DNA of 64,000 nucleotides. Origin: Anolis carolinensis. Its lineage: Eukaryota. Every line of letters begins with the position of its first letter. The first letter of the stretch is position 1. Positions 8,871 through 64,000 of this stretch are shown here, piece by piece. The stretch is from contig NC_085843.1 in the NCBI RefSeq assembly GCF_035594765.1, forward strand, positions 193,665,971 through 193,729,970, given 5' to 3'. Both the position numbers and the translations under genes were made by a program. Below the pieces are notes generated by a model. It ran no database searches, was not told where the DNA came from, and worked only from the letters and a program-made list of their open reading frames with translations.

Positions 8871-9020
8871 CAAGGCACAAGGTGCCTAAAAAACAGAACA
8901 TAAAGTAAACACAATATAAAATACAACTAAATAAAACATTTCAGCATGTAAATAACAACATAAAACTCAGATTAAAACTCAGATTAAAACAGCATGCATC
9001 CATCAATATATATATATACA

Positions 9021-9261
9021 CTAGCTTTGCCCGGCCACGCGTTGCTGTGGTTTATGGGAATCCTTTGTTGGCCAGGTGGAATAGCAGTGAATAGCCTTGC
9101 AGTCTCAAAGCCTGGCCATTTTCTGGAGTAGCTGGAGCTTTTGTTGTATGAACGTAGAGGCATGGATGAGGGGTTGTGCTGCCAAGTTTAGTGTTTCTGG
9201 GATGTGTAGTTTTGCTGTTTTGTCCTAGGTCAACATTTCACTACCCTTTTATATATATAGA
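9021..9261 (-). mobile_element. Short non-autonomous Helitron
   Basis: 5' TCTATATATATAAAAG; 3' GC-rich hairpin ccacagcaacgcgtggccgggc followed by CTAG and T; no TSD. Confidence 0.8.
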
Positions 9262-11509
9262 CTAGCTGTGCCCGGCCACGCGTTGCTGTGGCTTTTTTTT
9301 AGTGATGTTGGTCAATCTACATTGGGTTTTATTTTTGTTGTGACCGTCAACAAAAATTATACAGTATTATTTATTCATTTATTACATTAAAGACATATGA
9401 TAGGATATTACGCTATAACATATACGACTATTTCACAATATTAGTAGTAATATATATATTGTTTTGTTTTGTTATTAGTATTATATTGTAGTGTATTATA
9501 ATATTATTAGCAGTATTATATGTATATACAATGTATTGTATTATATATGTATTGTATTATTATATATATTAATATATTGCAAATTGGCCCCAGAGTACGG
9601 AATGGCCTTGTAGGTTCAAAGTGTGGGTGGTTTCCTGTGTGAAGGGGGGAATCCTTTGGTGGGAGGTGTTAGATGGCCCTGATTGTTTCCTGGATGGAAT
9701 AGCTGTGTTTTTAGAGTGTTGATCTTTATTTACTGTCCTGAGATGATATTGTTGTGTATTATTGTACCACAGTAATTATTTCATATTACAGTAGAATCTC
9801 ACCCAACATTCGTTTATGCAATGTTCTGGATTATGCAATGGAGTCTGCCTTTTAATAGTCAATGTTTTTGGAGTGAGTGTTTTTAATGTATTGTGATATT
9901 TTGGTGGTAAATTTGCAGATACAGTAATTACTACATAGCATTACTGCGCATGGAACTACTTTTTGTGTCAAATTTGTTGTATAACATGATGTTTTGGTGT
10001 TTAATTTGTATAATGATGACCTAATTCGATGTGTAATTGGTTTTCCTGAATCCCTTCTTATTATCCAACATATTTATTTATGCAACGTTCTGCCGGCTTG
10101 TTTATGTTGGATAAGTGAGATTCTAGTGTATATTTATAATGTGATATTATTTGTTTAGAAGTGGATTATATGAGGCGCCTTCTGTTATAACAATAATAAT
10201 TATTATAGTCTTGAATGATTATCATTGTGATAAAAATAATAACTACTTATTATTAGTTGTTATTATATTGTTGAATGATTATCAATGTTATAATAATAAT
10301 TATTAATTTGTGAATGATTATTACTATAATAATAATAATAATTTTCTATTATTACGATTTGTTAATACATTGTTGAATGATTGTCAGTGTTATAATAATA
10401 AGAACTGACTATTATTATGAATTATTATGTTCTCGAATGATTATCAGTATTATACTAATAATAAATTAGTATTATTATTGGTGATTATTACATTCTTAAC
10501 TGATGATCAGTTATTATATTAATAATTATTACAGGGAAGGGAAAGGTGAGGGCGATAGGGTTTGAGAGGGGAAAAAGGGGGGCTTCTGAGGCATTGGAGG
10601 GGTTGTAATTTGTGGGTGAGAACAACAACAACAACAACAACAACAGAAAAGGGGGAAGCTCAGCCTGGGCCAACTTGGGCCTTCCCTTGACTTGTTTTGG
10701 GCGCCAACTTCCACCCTTCCTGGCCTGAGGCTCTTTCCTTTTCCCCGTCAGCCGTTTAACCGGGTGAGGGGGAAAAGGAAGGGCCCTGAGGCCGGGAAGG
10801 GCGGGGGTTGGCGCCCCAAACAACTCGAGGGGAGGTCCAGGCCTGCTCGAGGGCCGTGCCCTCCTCTTCCCCCCTCACCTTGAAGAGCTTGAAGACCTCC
10901 GAGAAGAACCGAGAAGGGAGGAGGAGGAGAGAGGGTGAGGCGGGGGGGGGGCTCCACGGGGCCTTCCTCGCATTGGGGGGAGGGGAGAGGGGCGGGAGGA
11001 GGGGGCCTGAACGGCAACCGGGGCCCTCCATGGGCCCTGAGGGGGGAGGACATTGAGGGGGAGAGGGCAGAGAGCGACGTGAGGCCCGCACGCCTCCCAG
11101 CGCGGCCTCCTCCATCCCGCGCCCAGCAAGGAATCGGCCTCCCTGCCTTCCTTCCTTCAGCTCTGAGGCGAGGTGTGTGTGTGCGCGCGCGGGAAGGGAT
11201 GGGGGGGTGCGCGCAGGCGCACATCGCCTGTTGCAGTTTTTGGCCGTTTGTGGCCCTGTGATTGTGTTTGTCATATAAATCTTACTGGAGCCGCGCGAGC
11301 GCCATAAAGGTTTGAAGCATGGTGTTTTTGCGCATGCGTACTTAGTTTTGGCATTTTTTGGTGTTGTGATAGTGTTTTATGTGTAAATTTGTTGTATCTT
11401 ACTGGAGGCGGGGATGATGGATTGCGTTGCCAATTTTCGAGTTTGGGGGGGCTGTAGATTTGTTGTTTTGTCCATCGCCGTGATGCCATCACTCTTTTAT
11501 ATATATAGA
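9262..11509 (-). mobile_element. Non-autonomous Helitron (about 2.25 kb) with captured cargo
   Basis: A|TCTATATATATAAAAGAG 5' end at 11509; hairpin plus CTAG|T 3' end at 9262; contains a mariner MITE, an AT-rich simple repeat and a GC-rich block. Confidence 0.85.
9789..10128. mobile_element. Degenerate Tc1/mariner MITE nested in Helitron
   Basis: CAGTAGAATCTCAC...GTGAGATTCTAGTG flanked by TA; aligns with copies at 15745, 23307, 30591, 47471 and 52805. Confidence 0.8.
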
Positions 11510-12214
11510 TATACATACAGTACATATACACATATATAATCTGCTTATACTAGCCTAGGAGCTCAACTGAAATCCTAGCTTTCCTCTATCCTCAATGGCT
11601 ATCAGCAAGTTGTAATTGTAATTGTTCTTTGCATCCTGAATAATATTTGGAGTCAATGTGACTGGTATTTTAGGAAAAATGCAAAATTGTACTTGTTTCA
11701 AGCCATTCCCAAAAATTGGAATAGATTTCTGGAGTCAGACATATAAACTCAGCTTTGATAATATTTAACAAATTCTTCACTCAAGGATTATGCTTCAAAA
11801 CAGCTTCACAGACCAAATGAACAAAATGTCCTTCAATGACAGGTGAAGTAGTGTTATCTTCCCCCTCAAGAGTTGACCCATTGCAACCACAAAGAGGTCA
11901 GACCATTGGAGGGATTCTCATAGGAACACTGCTCTTCTTCCTTGGGACTGACAGACAAATTGTAGAAACTTTCCATGTGAATCTCTTTCCCTACATATTT
12001 GTAGCTATTCAAATAAGTACCAAAATTGCATGGGAATGAGCTACTGGGTCAAGGCACAAGTCAACAACCATAATGTTAAGAGCTGATCCATGTGTAACTG
12101 AAAATATGTTGACCAGCTATATGACTTTTAGCTTTAATGGCTTCTTCTGTTTCCCTTTCTAGCCTTCTGCAATACAATGATGGATATTAGTTGTAATCAT
12201 CCATGTATTTGAAT

Positions 12215-15744: not shown

Positions 15745-16067
15745 CAGTAGAGTCTCACTTATCCAACATTCGCTTAGCCAACGTTCTGGATTATCCAACG
15801 CATTTTTGTAGTTAATGATTTCAATATATCATGATATTTTGATGCTAAATTCGTAAATACAGTAATTACTACGTAGCGTTACTGCATATTGAATTACCTT
15901 TTCTGTCAAATTTGTTGTATAACATGATGTTTTGGTGCTTAATTTGTAAAATCATAACCTAATTTGATGTTTAATAGGCTTCTCCTTAATCTCTCTTTAT
16001 TATCCAACATATTCGCTTATCCAATGTTCTGCTGGCCCGTTTATGTTGGATAAGTGAGACTCTACTG
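15745..16067. mobile_element. Tc1/mariner MITE
   Basis: TIR CAGTAGAGTCTCACTTATCCAAC; TA TSD. Confidence 0.9.
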
Positions 16068-23306: not shown

Positions 23307-23629
23307 CAGTAGAGTCTCACTTATCCAACGTAAACAGGCCGGCAGAACGTTGGATAAGCGAATATGTTGGATAATAAGGAGAGATTAAGGAAAAGCCTAT
23401 TAAACATCAAATTAGGTTATGATTTTACATATTAAGCACCAAAACATCATGTTATACAACAAATTTGACAGAAAAAGTAGTTCAATACACAGTAATGGTA
23501 TGTTGTAATTACTGTATTTATGAATTTAGCACCAAAATATCATGATGTATTGAAAACATTGACCACAAAAATGTGTTGGATAATCCAGAATGTTGGATAA
23601 GCGAGTGTTGGATAAGTGAGACTCTACTG
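23307..23629. mobile_element. Tc1/mariner MITE
   Basis: TIR CAGTAGAGTCTCACTTATCCAAC; TA TSD. Confidence 0.9.
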
Positions 23630-28560: not shown

Positions 28561-28710
28561 GGGCCCTTCCACACAGCCATATAACCCAGAACACCAAGGC
28601 AGAAAATCCCACAATATATGCTTTGAACTAGGTTATCTGAGTCCACGCTGCCACATATTCCAGTTCAAAGCAGAAAATGTGGAAATTTATTCAGCTGTGT
28701 GGAAGGGGCC
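28561..28710. mobile_element. PIF/Harbinger MITE
   Basis: GGGCCCTTCCACACAGC...GCTGTGTGGAAGGGGCC TIRs; TTA TSD; empty site at paralog near 12810. Confidence 0.85.
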
Positions 28711-30043: not shown

Positions 30044-30172
30044 NNNNNNNNNNNNNNNNNNNNNNNNNNNNNNNNNNNNNNNNNNNNNNNNNNNNNNNNN
30101 NNNNNNNNNNNNNNNNNNNNNNNNNNNNNNNNNNNNNNNNNNNNNNNNNNNNNNNNNNNNNNNNNNNNNNNN
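30044..30172. other. Assembly gap (129 N)
   Basis: Run of n. Confidence 1.
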
Positions 30173-30590: not shown

Positions 30591-30912
30591 CAGTAGAGTC
30601 TCACTTATCCAACATTCACTTATCCAACTTTCTGGATTATCCAACACATTTTTGTAGTCAATGTTTTCAATACATTGTGATATTTTGGTGCTAAATTCGT
30701 AAATACAGTAATTACTACATAGCATTACTGCATATTGAACTACTTTTTCTGTCAGATTTGTTGTATAACATGATGTCTTGGTGCTAAATTTGTAAAATCA
30801 TAATCTAATTTGATTTTAATAGGCTTTTCCTTAATCCCTCCTTATTATCCAACATATTTGCTTATCCAACGTTCTGCCGGCCCGTTTATGTTGGATAAGT
30901 GAGACTCTACTG
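30591..30912. mobile_element. Tc1/mariner MITE
   Basis: TIR CAGTAGAGTCTCACTTATCCAAC; TA TSD. Confidence 0.9.
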
Positions 30913-33646: not shown

Positions 33647-33647
33647 C

Positions 33648-33696
<49 letters not shown>

Positions 33697-33709
33697 GATG
33701 ATGATGATG
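33647..33709 (-). CDS. Micro-exon, 63 nt, made of a trinucleotide microsatellite: Ser4-Thr16
   Basis: accag|CA(TCA)4(ACA)16 G|GTAAGT; flanks homologous to the other Ser/Thr micro-exons. Confidence 0.75.
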
Positions 33710-46159: not shown

Positions 46160-46590
46160 AGAATAATAACTTCCAATGTTCCAATAAATCTTTTTAATAT
46201 TAATCTTTCTTCTATAAATGACCTTCTATAAAATACTATTTGACCCTACTATTCTTCAAATCTCACTATTTGTTTTTCCAAAAAATAATCTCACATGCAC
46301 AAAAAAACCAATTAACAATTCCAATCTTTGTTGGGTCAACGAAATAATTTTTATCTAATCAAAATACTTACGGTAACTTGTCCTTCTCAGCAAGGGCATT
46401 AACTTTCATTAACCAATCCTCCTGTGGCAAAGTAGGAGTATCTTTCCATTTTTATACATACAACAATCTGTAATAACCTATTGCAATAGTCTTCCACTTT
46501 CCTTCTCAATATGATCTTTCATTGGAGTCAGCAAGAAAGAATCATACTTCAATCTCACATAGTATTTCCTTCCAGATTTCTATTTCTGTG
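46160..46590 (-). mobile_element. Degenerate L1-like 3' fragment
   Basis: Minus-strand remnant resembling the L1 ORF2 C-terminus (WKDTPTLPQEDWL) plus T-rich 3' UTR. Confidence 0.45.
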
Positions 46591-46605
46591 CAAGATAGGC
46601 ACAAG

Positions 46606-47470: not shown

Positions 47471-47756
47471 CAGTAGAGTCTCACTTATCCAAGCTAAATG
47501 GGCCGGCAGAAGCTTGGATAAGCGAATATCTTGGATAATAAGGAGGGATTAAGGAAAAGCCTAATAAACATCAAATTAGGTTGCTCAATACGTAGTTCAA
47601 AAAGTAGTTCAATACGCAGTAATGTTATGTTGTAATTACTGTATTTATGAATTTAGCACCAAAATATCATAATATATTGAAAACATTGACTACAAAAATG
47701 GCTTGGATTATCCAGAAGCTTGGATAACCGAGGCTTGGATAAGTGAGACTCTACTG
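47471..47756. mobile_element. Tc1/mariner MITE
   Basis: TIR CAGTAGAGTCTCACTTATCCAAG; TA TSD. Confidence 0.9.
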
Positions 47757-50244: not shown

Positions 50245-52600
50245 TTGGAGAAAGCATAATTGCTGAGGAGCAAGCTGGATTCAGAGAAGGTCAATCCACC
50301 ATAGACCAATGTCTGGCACTACAACATATTGTTGAAAAATACTCCTCCAAAATACATCTTCACTCTATGTCACCTTCATAGACATTAAAGCAGCTTTTGA
50401 CTCTATCTCCTGAGTTAAACTATGGGAAAAACTGGAGAGCTCTACAATCAACTGACTACTTCTTCACCTAATCTGCCTACTCCACGAAGGGACCTCACTG
50501 AAAATAAGATGTAACCCTGAGGGTCACCTCAACGAAGTAGTTGGAACAGAAAAAAAGTGTCAAGCAAGGCTGCATCCTGGCCCCTCTACAATTTAACTGC
50601 TACATCAACTCCATGGTAGACCTTCTTCACAACATGGATTCCCCCCCCCCCCCAAACTGACAGGAAAACGTATTTCCACCTTACTTTATGCAGATGATGT
50701 AGCTGTACTCTCAAGAACACCCATTGGCCTTAAAAGAGCACTGAGACCATGAACACAATACTGCAAGGCAGATCAGCTCCAACTTAATTATAAGAATACC
50801 AAAATCATTGCATTTGCCAAAAGACCCAAGTGTCACGACTGAAGCACAGATGGATAAAAATTGATCAGGTCTCATGTTTCAAATATCTGGGAGTAGTCCT
50901 TCAATCCAACAGTAGCAGAAGAGCCCATGGATACATGTGGCTGAGTCTGAAAAAAGGAGCTCATTTGCCATTCTAAAATACCTCAATCAAGAGGGGGCAA
51001 CTTCATACCTGCAGCATTCAAATTATTTGAAGCCAAACCAGTTGCACAACTCCTGTATGGAGCCCAGCTAGTTTCCCCAATTACTATAATTGGGGAAACT
51101 TCAGGGGTTCCTATCTCCCTCATGTTTAAAGCTATTGGAGTGAAACTTACTAAAAAGGTAGGATACATTTACCACTCTTAGCCTACCAAATTTCAGAATG
51201 TTTCACTTATCCACATAATTTTTGGGGAATTTTTATTTTTTTATAAATAACATTTTAAAAAATACAAAACTATCTCCTTGAATTTTCTATACAATGACAG
51301 GAGATAACAGGGGATCATTCCCCCACAACTTTCAGAAATATTCACACATATATTCAAATTATTTGAAGCCAAACCAGTGGCACAACTCCTATATGGAGCC
51401 CAGCTAGGCCCCTTCTCCAATTTTGCCCCCATAGAGCTTGCACAAGCAATATTTTGAGATCAGTCCTGCAAGTACCAAAATGTGTCTCAAATGTTATTCT
51501 GCAACTGGAGACAGCCTTCATGAAAATGGAGGCCAGAGTGTGGATTGTCTTACTTAACTACTGGCTCAGAATATCCCATGATTCTCCTGGTCTTGCCCCA
51601 CTGACCATGAAGAATGACTTCCAATCCACATGGAAACAAGCGGTAGCAACGAAAATCTCATCACTGGGCTTCTGACCAGGGTTGCTACTCAGGACGGAGC
51701 ACGATCAAGCCAAAGCACTAATCAAACAAAGTATCTCAGACACAGAGCACTAATTGGATCAAGCCTATTGGAAGGACCCTCAGGGCTCTTCCACACAGCC
51801 ATATAACCCAGAATATCAAAGCAGAATAACCCACAATATCTGCTTTGAACTGGGTTATCTGAGTCCACACTGCCCTATATCCCAGTTCAATGTTTGGTGC
51901 TAAATTTGCAAATAAAGTAATTCCTACATAACATTACCAGGTATTGAACTGCTTTTTCTGTTGATTTGTTGTAAAACATGATGTTTTGGTGCTTAATTTG
52001 TAAAATCATAATGTAATTTGATGTTTAATAGGCTTTTCCTTAATCCCTCTTTATTATCCAATATTTTCACTTATCCAACGCTTTTATTTTTCAGTGATTG
52101 GTTTGGGGGGGGGGCACGCCAATATTCTGTTTGCTTACACTTGAAAATTACCTAGGGCTGGCCCTGATTTCACCTCCCCTATGGCATACTTAACAAATTT
52201 AGAGGTTCCCAATCATTGGAGGACCTTCACCCTGGCTCAATGTCATGCCCTTCCATCAGCTGTACACGAGGGCCCCTACCCAGAGAGACTCTGCCCCTGT
52301 GACTTGGGTCAAATAGAAACAACTGATCATTTGCTCCTCTAGTGCTTGTTCTACAGGGACATTCAATCCAGACTCATCCTGCCTTTGCTATATAATTACC
52401 CAGGCCATTCAGGACAATTCTACACCACCTTGCTGCTCTCAGATACCAACCCAGTTATAACCTATAATGCTGCCACATTTTGTGCCGAAGCACTCAAAAT
52501 CTGCCGGGTGATTACTGGTTCCAAAAGTTAACAATCTAACTATCAGCTAACTGAAATGTAAATCACTTTTACCCACCTTAGTCCCCTAGACTTGATGGAT
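50245..52600 (+). mobile_element. Degenerate non-LTR retrotransposon (RTE-X-like) with nested insertions
   Basis: EEQAGFREGQSTIDQ, IDIKAAFDSI, KQGCILAP, LLYADD and FKYLG motifs with stops; CCHC C-terminus. Confidence 0.8.
51781..52166. mobile_element. Composite DNA element (CAGGGC...GCCCTG ends) carrying Harbinger- and mariner-MITE pieces
   Basis: Segments match 28561-28660 and the mariner MITE interior. Confidence 0.55.
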
Positions 52601-52671: not shown

Positions 52672-54219
52672 TAGGGATGTGCAATACATAAAATATGGCT
52701 CAAAAGTCATTACAAAACTGGAGCACTTTGTTTTTAAAGTGTTTCGAAAGTATACTTACTGGAAAGTTCATTACTATAATGAGAGTAAAGAAACTTTGTT
52801 ACTACAGTAGAGTCACTTATCCAAGACTCGTTTATCCAAGGTTCTGGATTATCCAAAGCATTTTTGTAGTCAGTGTTTTCAATATATCATGATATTTTGG
52901 TGCTAAATTCGTAAATACAGTAATTACAACATAACATTACTGCGTATTGAACTACTTTTTCTGTCAAATTTGTTGTATAACATGATGTTTTGGCGCTTAA
53001 TTTGTAAAATCATAATCTAATTTGATGTTTAATAGGCTTTTCCTTAATCCCTCATTATCCAAGATATTCACTTATCCAAGCTTCTGCCGGCCCTTTTAGC
53101 TTGGATAAGTGAGACTCTACTGTATTTCATTATTGTAATTGCACATGCACATAATTACTATAATTGGGGAAACTTCAGAGGATCCTATCTCCCTCATGTT
53201 TAAAGCTATCGGGGTGAAACTTACTACAAAGGTAGGGTACATTTACCACTCTTAACCTACTAAATTTCAGAATGTTTCACTTATCCATGTAATTTTGGGG
53301 GAATATTCAAAGTTTTTATAAACAACATTTAAAGAAAACTACAAGAGCTATCTCTTTGAATTTTCTATACAATGACAGGAGATAACAGGGGATCATTCCC
53401 CCCAACTTTCAGAAATATTTATACATATACTGATTTTAGGGATTTTAAAAAAGTTTTGACAAAAACATTTTTAAAAGCCACAACAGCTATCTCATTGAAT
53501 CCTAGAGTTGGCTCCCAAGAGCCATTCTAATACAACCCCCTTCTTCCAGGCAGAAGGGCACCATCAAAACTCTACTGACAGATGGCCATCCAGCCTCTAA
53601 ACTAATTAATATGCTTCCCCTATAGTATGGGGGCCATACATTTAGGGGTTTCTTCCCAACCCAGCACAGAGATTTACTTACTCAAAGAATTCGTCAGTCC
53701 TCCTCTTTGCAGATTTAACTATTCATTGTAACTTTCGCAGGCTGTTATTAGGGAGGTATAAATCTCTCTCTCCACTACCCTTTTTGGTGCTTTTGATCCT
53801 GATGCATTCTTGGAAATGTAGTTTAGGGCATAGCCCTTTGAATTCTCTGGCATAGGACTCCTCCTTTCCCAAATTACATTTCCCAGAGTTTTATGCTGCT
53901 CCCAGAAAACATTGCTCCCTCTGTTCCCTTCTCCTAATGGCGAGAGAGAGGCCATTAATTTGCAGAGGAAAGGTAAGGCAGGCACTAAGGCAGCCTTTTT
54001 TGGCTTTGCTTTTTGAGCTTTGATTCCTTGCACTGAATATGAAACTGACTTTAGGAGCCTTCTGAGATTTACAAAACTAAAACGAAAAAGTATGGGGTAA
54101 GTTTCAATTTCTTAATTTTTTGCGCAGACCGCTCATGCACATTGGATATCGCATCATAAGTACGAATCATACGAAACTGATCCAACTTATGACACTTTCC
54201 AATTCTTTCCACATGCCTA
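52672..54219. mobile_element. hAT non-autonomous element (TAGGG termini) containing a mariner MITE
   Basis: TAGGGATGTG...CACATGCCTA; TSD ataactac/ataactag. Confidence 0.75.
52805..53122. mobile_element. Tc1/mariner MITE
   Basis: Same TIR family; TA TSD. Confidence 0.88.
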
Positions 54220-63498: not shown

Positions 63499-64000
63499 TC
63501 TATATATATAAAAGAGGGATAGCATCAGGGTAGCGGACAAAACAACAAAACTACAGGCCTCCAACCTTGAAATTTGACAACACAACCCATCATTCACAGC
63601 TCTAGGTTGATACAACAAAAAGAAAAGAAAAATAAAGTCCTAATTACAAGGAGAGGAATAATAGTTTTTATCCAATTGCTGCCAGTTAGAAGGCTAAGCT
63701 CCGCCCACTTGGTCTCGGGGGACAGGCACAGTTAGGCCTCACTTAGGCCTCTTCCACAGATTATCAGATTTTAACTGGATTATATGGCAGTGTAGACTCA
63801 AGGTCCTTCCACACAGCTATATCACCCATTTAGAGTCTTATATTATCTGCTTTGAACTGTATTATCTTGACTCCACACTGCCATATAATCCACTTCAGTG
63901 TGCATACTAAACACAAAGACTACCATACAACAGACATTCAATACCACCACTACCTCAACAATTTCTCACCAACACCACCAGACAACGCCACAGCAACGCG
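63499..64000 (+). mobile_element. Non-autonomous Helitron, 3' end just beyond the window
   Basis: A|TCTATATATATAAAAGAG 5' end matching 11509; window ends within the hairpin cgccacagcaacgcg. Confidence 0.85.

Follow-up and report, generated by a model that had tools for sequence, protein, structure and literature searches.

We analysed a 64-kb stretch of Anolis carolinensis DNA (the window) containing three rolling-circle transposons (Helitrons), here called A, B and C, two of which lie in tandem on the minus strand and one of which lies on the plus strand at the end of the window. A miniature inverted-repeat element (MITE) of the Tc1/mariner type is nested inside Helitron B, and free copies of the same MITE elsewhere in the window provide controls. 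The features used in this study are as follows (coordinates are those of the window).

9021-9261, minus strand: Helitron A, 241 bp, joined head-to-tail to Helitron B; plus-strand GC skew +0.23.
9262-11509, minus strand: Helitron B, non-autonomous, 2.25 kb, with its 5' end TCTATATATATAAAAGAG at 11509 and its 3' end ...CAACGCGTGGCCGGGCACAGCTAG at 9262.
9295-9788: backbone stretch of Helitron B.
9789-10128, plus strand: Tc1/mariner-type MITE of 340 bp nested in Helitron B, flanked by a TA duplication.
10129-10535, minus strand: AT-rich tandem array inside Helitron B, seen as self-matches (C 6%, G 12% on the plus strand).
10536-11240, minus strand: GC-rich exon-like cargo block of Helitron B (plus-strand G 39%, C 26%).
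10676-10839, no strand assigned: 164-bp palindrome inside the GC-rich cargo.
63499-64000, plus strand: Helitron C, cut by the end of the window within its 3' terminus; plus-strand GC skew -0.24.
63752-63901, plus strand: MITE-like cargo with terminal inverted repeats (TIRs) in Helitron C; the earlier note called it a Harbinger MITE.
15745-16067, plus strand: free copy of the mariner-type MITE (control), TA duplication.
30591-30912, plus strand: free copy of the mariner-type MITE (control), TA duplication.
52805-53122, plus strand: free copy of the mariner-type MITE (control), of a CCAAG-motif subfamily shared with the copy at 47471.
23307-23629, minus strand: free copy of the mariner-type MITE (control), TA duplication.
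47471-47698, minus strand: free, internally deleted copy of the mariner-type MITE (control).
51779-52080, plus strand: free copy of the second MITE-like repeat (51779-51893) followed by a partial mariner-MITE copy (51893-52080), both used as references.
28562-28688, plus strand: free copy of the second MITE-like repeat (reference for the Helitron C cargo).

Helitron and MITE anatomy

The Helitron termini were found by pattern search. The three elements share the 5' terminus TCTATATATATAAAAG and the 3' terminus ...CAACGCGTGGCCGGGCAnAGCTAG; on the minus strand at 9262-11509 the 3' end reads ...GCGTGGCCGGGCAnAGCTAG, and elements A and B both end in AGCTAG. Thus, the TC and CTRR ends expected of a Helitron are present. 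On the top strand (5'-TC...CTAG-3'), an A precedes the TC of element B (base 11510) and a T follows the CTAG of element A (base 9020), as expected for insertion between A and T without target duplication, and no TIRs are present. A stem of 6-7 bp, (G)CCAC.GC/GCGTGG(C), lies 13 nt before the 3' end, but it is not energetically distinctive (z -1.5 and +0.2), so that its presence does not tell us whether the hairpin typical of Helitrons is formed here. No Rep/helicase ORF was found: there is no long ORF apart from one low-complexity ORF in the cargo, and none of eight ORFs of the Helitron cargo was found in the protein collection searched. The elements are non-autonomous, as most anole Helitron families are (PMC3014272).

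The three elements share only about 120 nt at the 5' end and 30-60 nt at the 3' end, with 20-28% divergence, and so are different subfamilies. A three-way comparison of the 5' 123 nt gave no usable polarity; there were 38 private changes of all kinds, and G is already scarce there. At 9258-9265 Helitrons B and A are joined precisely, the 3' CTAG of B abutting the 5' TC of A, although they belong to different subfamilies. This looks like insertion of one element exactly at the A|T boundary of the other rather than read-through of one element.

A BLAST search of the nested MITE against the window found four full free copies (15745, 30591, 52805 and, reversed, 23307), one internally deleted copy (47471, reversed) and one partial copy (51893). 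All five full copies, the nested one included, are flanked by TA on both sides and end in CAGTAGAGTCTCAC.../...GTGAGACTCTACTG, so that mariner-type MITE is a fair label. The copies at 52805-53122 and 47471-47698 share CCAAC>CCAAG in every copy of the repeated TTATCCAAC motif (five or six places), a concerted change of what is probably the transposase-binding repeat that marks a distinct MITE subfamily. An N run at 30044-30172, an assembly gap, was left alone.

Strand-specific base loss inside the Helitrons

The earlier note had listed seven plus-strand C>G changes in the nested MITE relative to its free copies, with no G>C, and its observation holds. In our alignment of the nested copy with five full or near-full free copies and the partial copy, C>G is present at 9818, 9835, 9907, 9965, 10015, 10082 and 10126, as listed, and at one more site, 9875; there is no G>C. 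Against the consensus of the free copies (304 comparable columns), the nested copy lost C at 21 of 57 sites (13 to T, 8 to G, 0 to A), G at 2 of 42 (2 to A), A at 8 of 85 (6 to G, 2 to T) and T at 7 of 120 (4 to G, 3 to C). C loss against G loss gives Fisher p = 1.9e-4, and the copy gained 18 G but only 3 C. The five free copies lost C at 5-17% and G at 5-16% of sites with no skew (p 0.34-1). Nested against pooled free copies gives p = 1.4e-5 for C loss and no significant difference for G loss. So the nested copy is not simply older; the excess is confined to plus-strand C, which corresponds to G on the top strand of the Helitron.

Six of the eight C>G changes follow a T (the earlier note had counted five of seven). 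C>G is enriched at TpC, with 6 of 18 sites against 2 of 34 other non-CpG C (p = 0.015), but three of the six sit at the same position of the repeated TTATCCAA motif; C>T shows no such preference (2/18 against 9/34), and for any loss p = 0.55, so that whether there is a TpC preference for both changes is left undecided by these counts. Three of the four intact direct-orientation copies of the TTATCCAA motif became TTATGCAA, while the inverted copy in the right TIR (TTGGATAA on the plus strand) is intact. At 9838-9880 the nested MITE carries a local duplication of roughly 22 bp of the TTTTGTAGTCAATGT stretch that aligns ambiguously, and the second copy has three further changes, all to G. Seven of the eight C>G sites (all but 9875) lie in cleanly aligned blocks.

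Several separate comparisons in the window point the same way, although the counts are small (one MITE, one short second cargo and one palindrome). First, in the oppositely oriented Helitron C the sign flips. Its TIR-bearing MITE-like cargo has two free copies, and in the well-aligned blocks (77 columns where the two free copies agree) it lost 5 of 13 G (2 to C, 2 to A, 1 to T) and 2 of 23 C on the plus strand, which is the top strand here. The two G>C changes are at 63871 and 63893, confirming those given in the earlier note relative to the free copies at about 28562-28688 and 51779-51893. Alone this gives p = 0.07; combined with the mariner-type MITE and oriented to the top strand, G loss is 26/70, about a third, against C loss of 4/65 (p = 1e-5).

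Second, the palindrome in Helitron B allows polarisation without an outgroup, since plus-strand C>T or A>G leaves G·T mismatches between the arms and the reverse changes leave A·C. Its 16 arm mismatches are G·T 8, G·G 3, C·C 2, C·T 2 and A·C 1. G·T against A·C gives binomial p = 0.039, whereas G·G against C·C (3 against 2) is neutral.

Third, plus-strand GC skew is +0.19 to +0.33 in Helitron A and in each of the five segments of Helitron B and -0.24 in Helitron C, while in the 1-kb flanks it is between -0.14 and 0. Free MITE copies in the same orientation have -0.09 to -0.16, against +0.19 for the nested copy. Finally, the maximum-scoring G-over-C segment of the entire 64 kb is 9041-11470, within 20-40 bp of the outer ends of Helitrons A and B taken together (9021-11509), and none of 200 block permutations reached its score. 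The local C-rich maximum near the end of the window, 63538-63997, matches Helitron C. Seven of the eight most skewed 400-bp windows lie in Helitron B. The second most skewed stretch of the window (46201-46600, C over G, skew -0.37) is AT-rich and has no Helitron termini; its cause is unknown and it was not pursued. Within the minus-strand elements, the last 30 nt of the top strand (short stem and CTAG; 9262-9291 and 9021-9050) stay G-rich (9 G of 30) while the rest of the element is G-poor, which suggests that selection on the functional terminus counteracts the G loss.

Possible origins of the base loss

What the analysis establishes is that sequence inside the Helitrons of this window has lost G on the element's own top strand, mostly to A and C (equivalently, the bottom strand lost C to T and G), and that free copies of the same repeats and the DNA immediately outside the elements have not. 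How and when this happened is inference on our part. The earlier note had proposed that single-stranded rolling-circle intermediates receive asymmetric damage, either cytosine deamination with abasic-site/REV1 bypass or guanine oxidation, possibly as a host defence against Helitrons. This interpretation is supported in part, within the limits of one window: the asymmetry is tied to the orientation of the Helitron, is bounded by its ends and is absent from free copies of the same MITE, but the cause is not settled, the proposed causes are partly right at best, and the host-defence idea was not put to a test here. The pattern looks like a scar left by the way these elements copy themselves.

We favour, with moderate confidence, damage to bottom-strand cytosine that is copied when the donor is resynthesised, with the changes accumulating in the Helitron lineage while it replicated and not at this locus after insertion. 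If the displaced top strand were the damaged single strand, cytosine deamination would remove top-strand C, the opposite of what is seen, and deamination therefore fits only if the bottom (template) strand is the one hit. Helraiser experiments show that only the top strand is transposed, that the donor is rebuilt by DNA synthesis and reused, and that integrations come more often from resynthesised than from original donors (PMC5876387). In the peel-and-paste model the top strand is nicked and peeled off, and the donor is rebuilt by copying the bottom strand, over and over. In this view the bottom strand of an active donor is a long-lived template and every exported top strand is a fresh copy of it. 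A bottom-strand C deaminated to U, or turned into an abasic site, while unpaired would be copied into the new top strand as A (giving G>A) or as C (REV1-type insertion, giving G>C), and the next firing would export that mutated top strand. Uracil or abasic sites in single-stranded DNA are fixed as C>T or C>G (PMC11230362), and the bottom-strand spectrum has C>T 13, C>G 8 and C>A 0 in the nested MITE, against 2 G>A and 0 G>C, as expected of a strand-coordinated deamination signature. The smaller excesses of T>G (4 against 0) and A>G (6 against 3) fit the same insertion of C opposite abasic sites.

There are at least three difficulties with this model. C>G and C>T differ in context (C>G mostly at TpC, C>T mostly elsewhere), which a single lesion does not predict. 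In the published fork model the peeled-off top strand should be at least as exposed as the bottom strand, yet top-strand C is spared. Also, neither other copies of these Helitrons nor a genome-wide sample of the MITE was examined, so that the timing of the changes (master lineage or after insertion) is not shown. Whether the deamination would be spontaneous or enzymatic is open; green anole APOBEC1 is a DNA mutator, and G>A editing has been reported in L1 elements of this species (PMC3880073), making an enzymatic cause possible, though it was not assayed. A more speculative reading, which we consider unlikely but not excluded, is that the footprint is made by a host single-strand cytosine deaminase (lizard APOBEC1 or a relative) attacking the unpaired bottom strand of firing Helitron donors. 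That would be the first case of AID/APOBEC-type restriction of a DNA transposon, and the number of lost bases would count how often a Helitron lineage has replicated.

A second, less likely possibility is that the process is Helitron-linked but the damaged base is guanine on the displaced top strand while it is single-stranded (oxidation beyond 8-oxoG, or alkylation), miscopying during second-strand synthesis then giving G>C and G>A. The top strand is the one peeled off and transferred (PMC5876387) and is the obvious single-stranded species, and 26 of 70 top-strand G were lost. However, G>T, the main outcome of 8-oxoG, is nearly absent (0 of 21 G losses in the MITE and 1 of 5 in the Helitron C cargo), which contradicts guanine oxidation of the 8-oxoG type and weakens the guanine-oxidation option of the earlier note. 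It would take two different guanine lesions to give both G>A and G>C, the extra A>C and T>C on the top strand (bottom-strand T>G 4, A>G 6) would not be explained, and top-strand C, which deaminates fast when single-stranded, is spared.

It is also possible, though unlikely as a full account, that there is no special mutation process: the nested MITE would descend from a subfamily that already carried these bases, and the Helitron backbone would simply be A+C-rich by descent. Subfamilies with concerted motif changes exist (the copies at 52805 and 47471), and three of the eight C>G changes share one position of the TTATCCAA motif. In addition, 9796 G>A and 10121 C>T form a compensatory pair that keeps the two TIRs complementary and are therefore probably inherited. 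A subfamily origin for some of the changes is not excluded; the earlier note had named copies with these bases outside Helitrons as the finding that would overturn its reading, and the comparison covered only the five or six free copies of this window and not the genome. Against a pure subfamily reading, the inverted motif copy is unchanged, as a strand-specific process predicts and a concerted motif change does not; 10126 C>G in the right repeat has no partner change in the left repeat; and a subfamily difference has no reason to lose 21 C and only 2 G. Moreover, an unrelated cargo in the oppositely oriented element mirrors the pattern, the palindrome mismatches are skewed, and the skew covers unrelated cargo blocks and stops at the element ends.

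A local process acting after insertion, such as transcription- or replication-associated strand asymmetry or a single clustered (kataegis-like) event, is similarly doubtful. Strand-coordinated clusters of C>T and C>G are known from single-stranded DNA at breaks and forks (PMC3628087), but here the skew starts and stops within 20-40 bp of the Helitron ends, the flanks are unskewed, and three separate elements show it, one of them 52 kb away with the opposite sign that matches its opposite orientation. Chance, misalignment or assembly error is very unlikely given p values of 1e-4 to 1e-5 in the primary comparison with internal controls and independent replicates, although the finding was picked by eye from a 64-kb window, with some selection bias, one duplicated stretch aligns ambiguously, and no reads-based copy-number or variant test was made.

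Related systems, implications and possibly captured sequence

Published surveys of anole DNA transposons describe these Helitron families, their youth and their occasional capture of other repeats but say nothing about strand-specific substitution (PMC3014272), and a review of TE base composition does not mention it for Helitrons (PMC9099904). Full-text literature searches for Helitrons with strand asymmetry, APOBEC or hypermutation found nothing relevant, and the footprint appears undescribed. AID/APOBEC editing of retroelements (G>A clusters on the plus strand), including that reported for green anole L1 (PMC3880073), is likewise a strand-specific, element-oriented loss of one base, caused, as is proposed here, by damage to a single-stranded replication intermediate, and its G>A component looks like the top-strand G>A seen here; the host also has a DNA-mutator APOBEC1. 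Here, however, the element is a DNA rolling-circle transposon, about 40% of the losses are transversions (G>C), which are rare in retroelement editing, and no deaminase motif is established. APOBEC-type clustered mutation (kataegis; COSMIC SBS2 plus SBS13) with UNG- and REV1-dependent C>G shares same-strand C>T plus C>G with almost no C>A and C>G enriched after T, although three of the six sites after T lie in one motif. The present case differs in being germline and evolutionary rather than somatic, bounded by a mobile element, without TpC enrichment of C>T and with additional T>G and A>G changes.

Genomes that replicate through long-lived single strands (vertebrate mitochondrial DNA, ssDNA viruses, rolling-circle replicons) also show a compositional skew that follows the strand left unpaired during replication; this comparison was not tested here. 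Those skews are dominated by transitions (C>T, A>G) on the exposed strand, whereas here the spared strand is the one expected to be displaced and transversions to G are prominent. Repeat-induced point mutation (RIP) of fungal transposons is hypermutation confined to repeated or mobile DNA, but it gives C>T on both strands in duplicated DNA; here the change is one-stranded and includes C>G, and free multi-copy MITEs are untouched.

How Helitrons replicate in animals is known mainly from one reconstructed bat element studied in cultured cells. If the footprint is confirmed, a heritable one-strand scar would be a natural record of which strand serves as the long-lived template in vivo, it would explain the odd A+C-rich top strands of these elements, and it would give a way to tell DNA that has travelled inside a Helitron from DNA that has not, and perhaps to count replication rounds. 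It would also extend strand-coordinated, single-strand-type hypermutation from retroelements and tumours to a germline DNA transposon. As a practical warning, Helitron cargo (captured exons and promoters) diverges from its source much faster and more directionally than a neutral clock assumes.

A 172-aa ORF at 10759-11274 (minus strand), running from the 5' region of Helitron B into the GC-rich cargo, matches residues 1-155 of the annotated Anolis carolinensis SH3BGRL2 isoform X2 (40% identity, E 2e-6, the only hit). The match ends where the cargo has an AAG|GTGAGG splice donor, near 10880, and the protein continues into the conserved SH3BGRL domain. A copy of this Helitron family therefore probably supplies an alternative first exon or promoter to that gene, or the cargo was captured from it; the SH3BGRL2 locus itself was not examined. 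The same cargo contains an (AAC)n microsatellite (10621-10646) that matches a long (GTT)n/(AAC)n run at 33647-33703, a similarity of simple sequence only.
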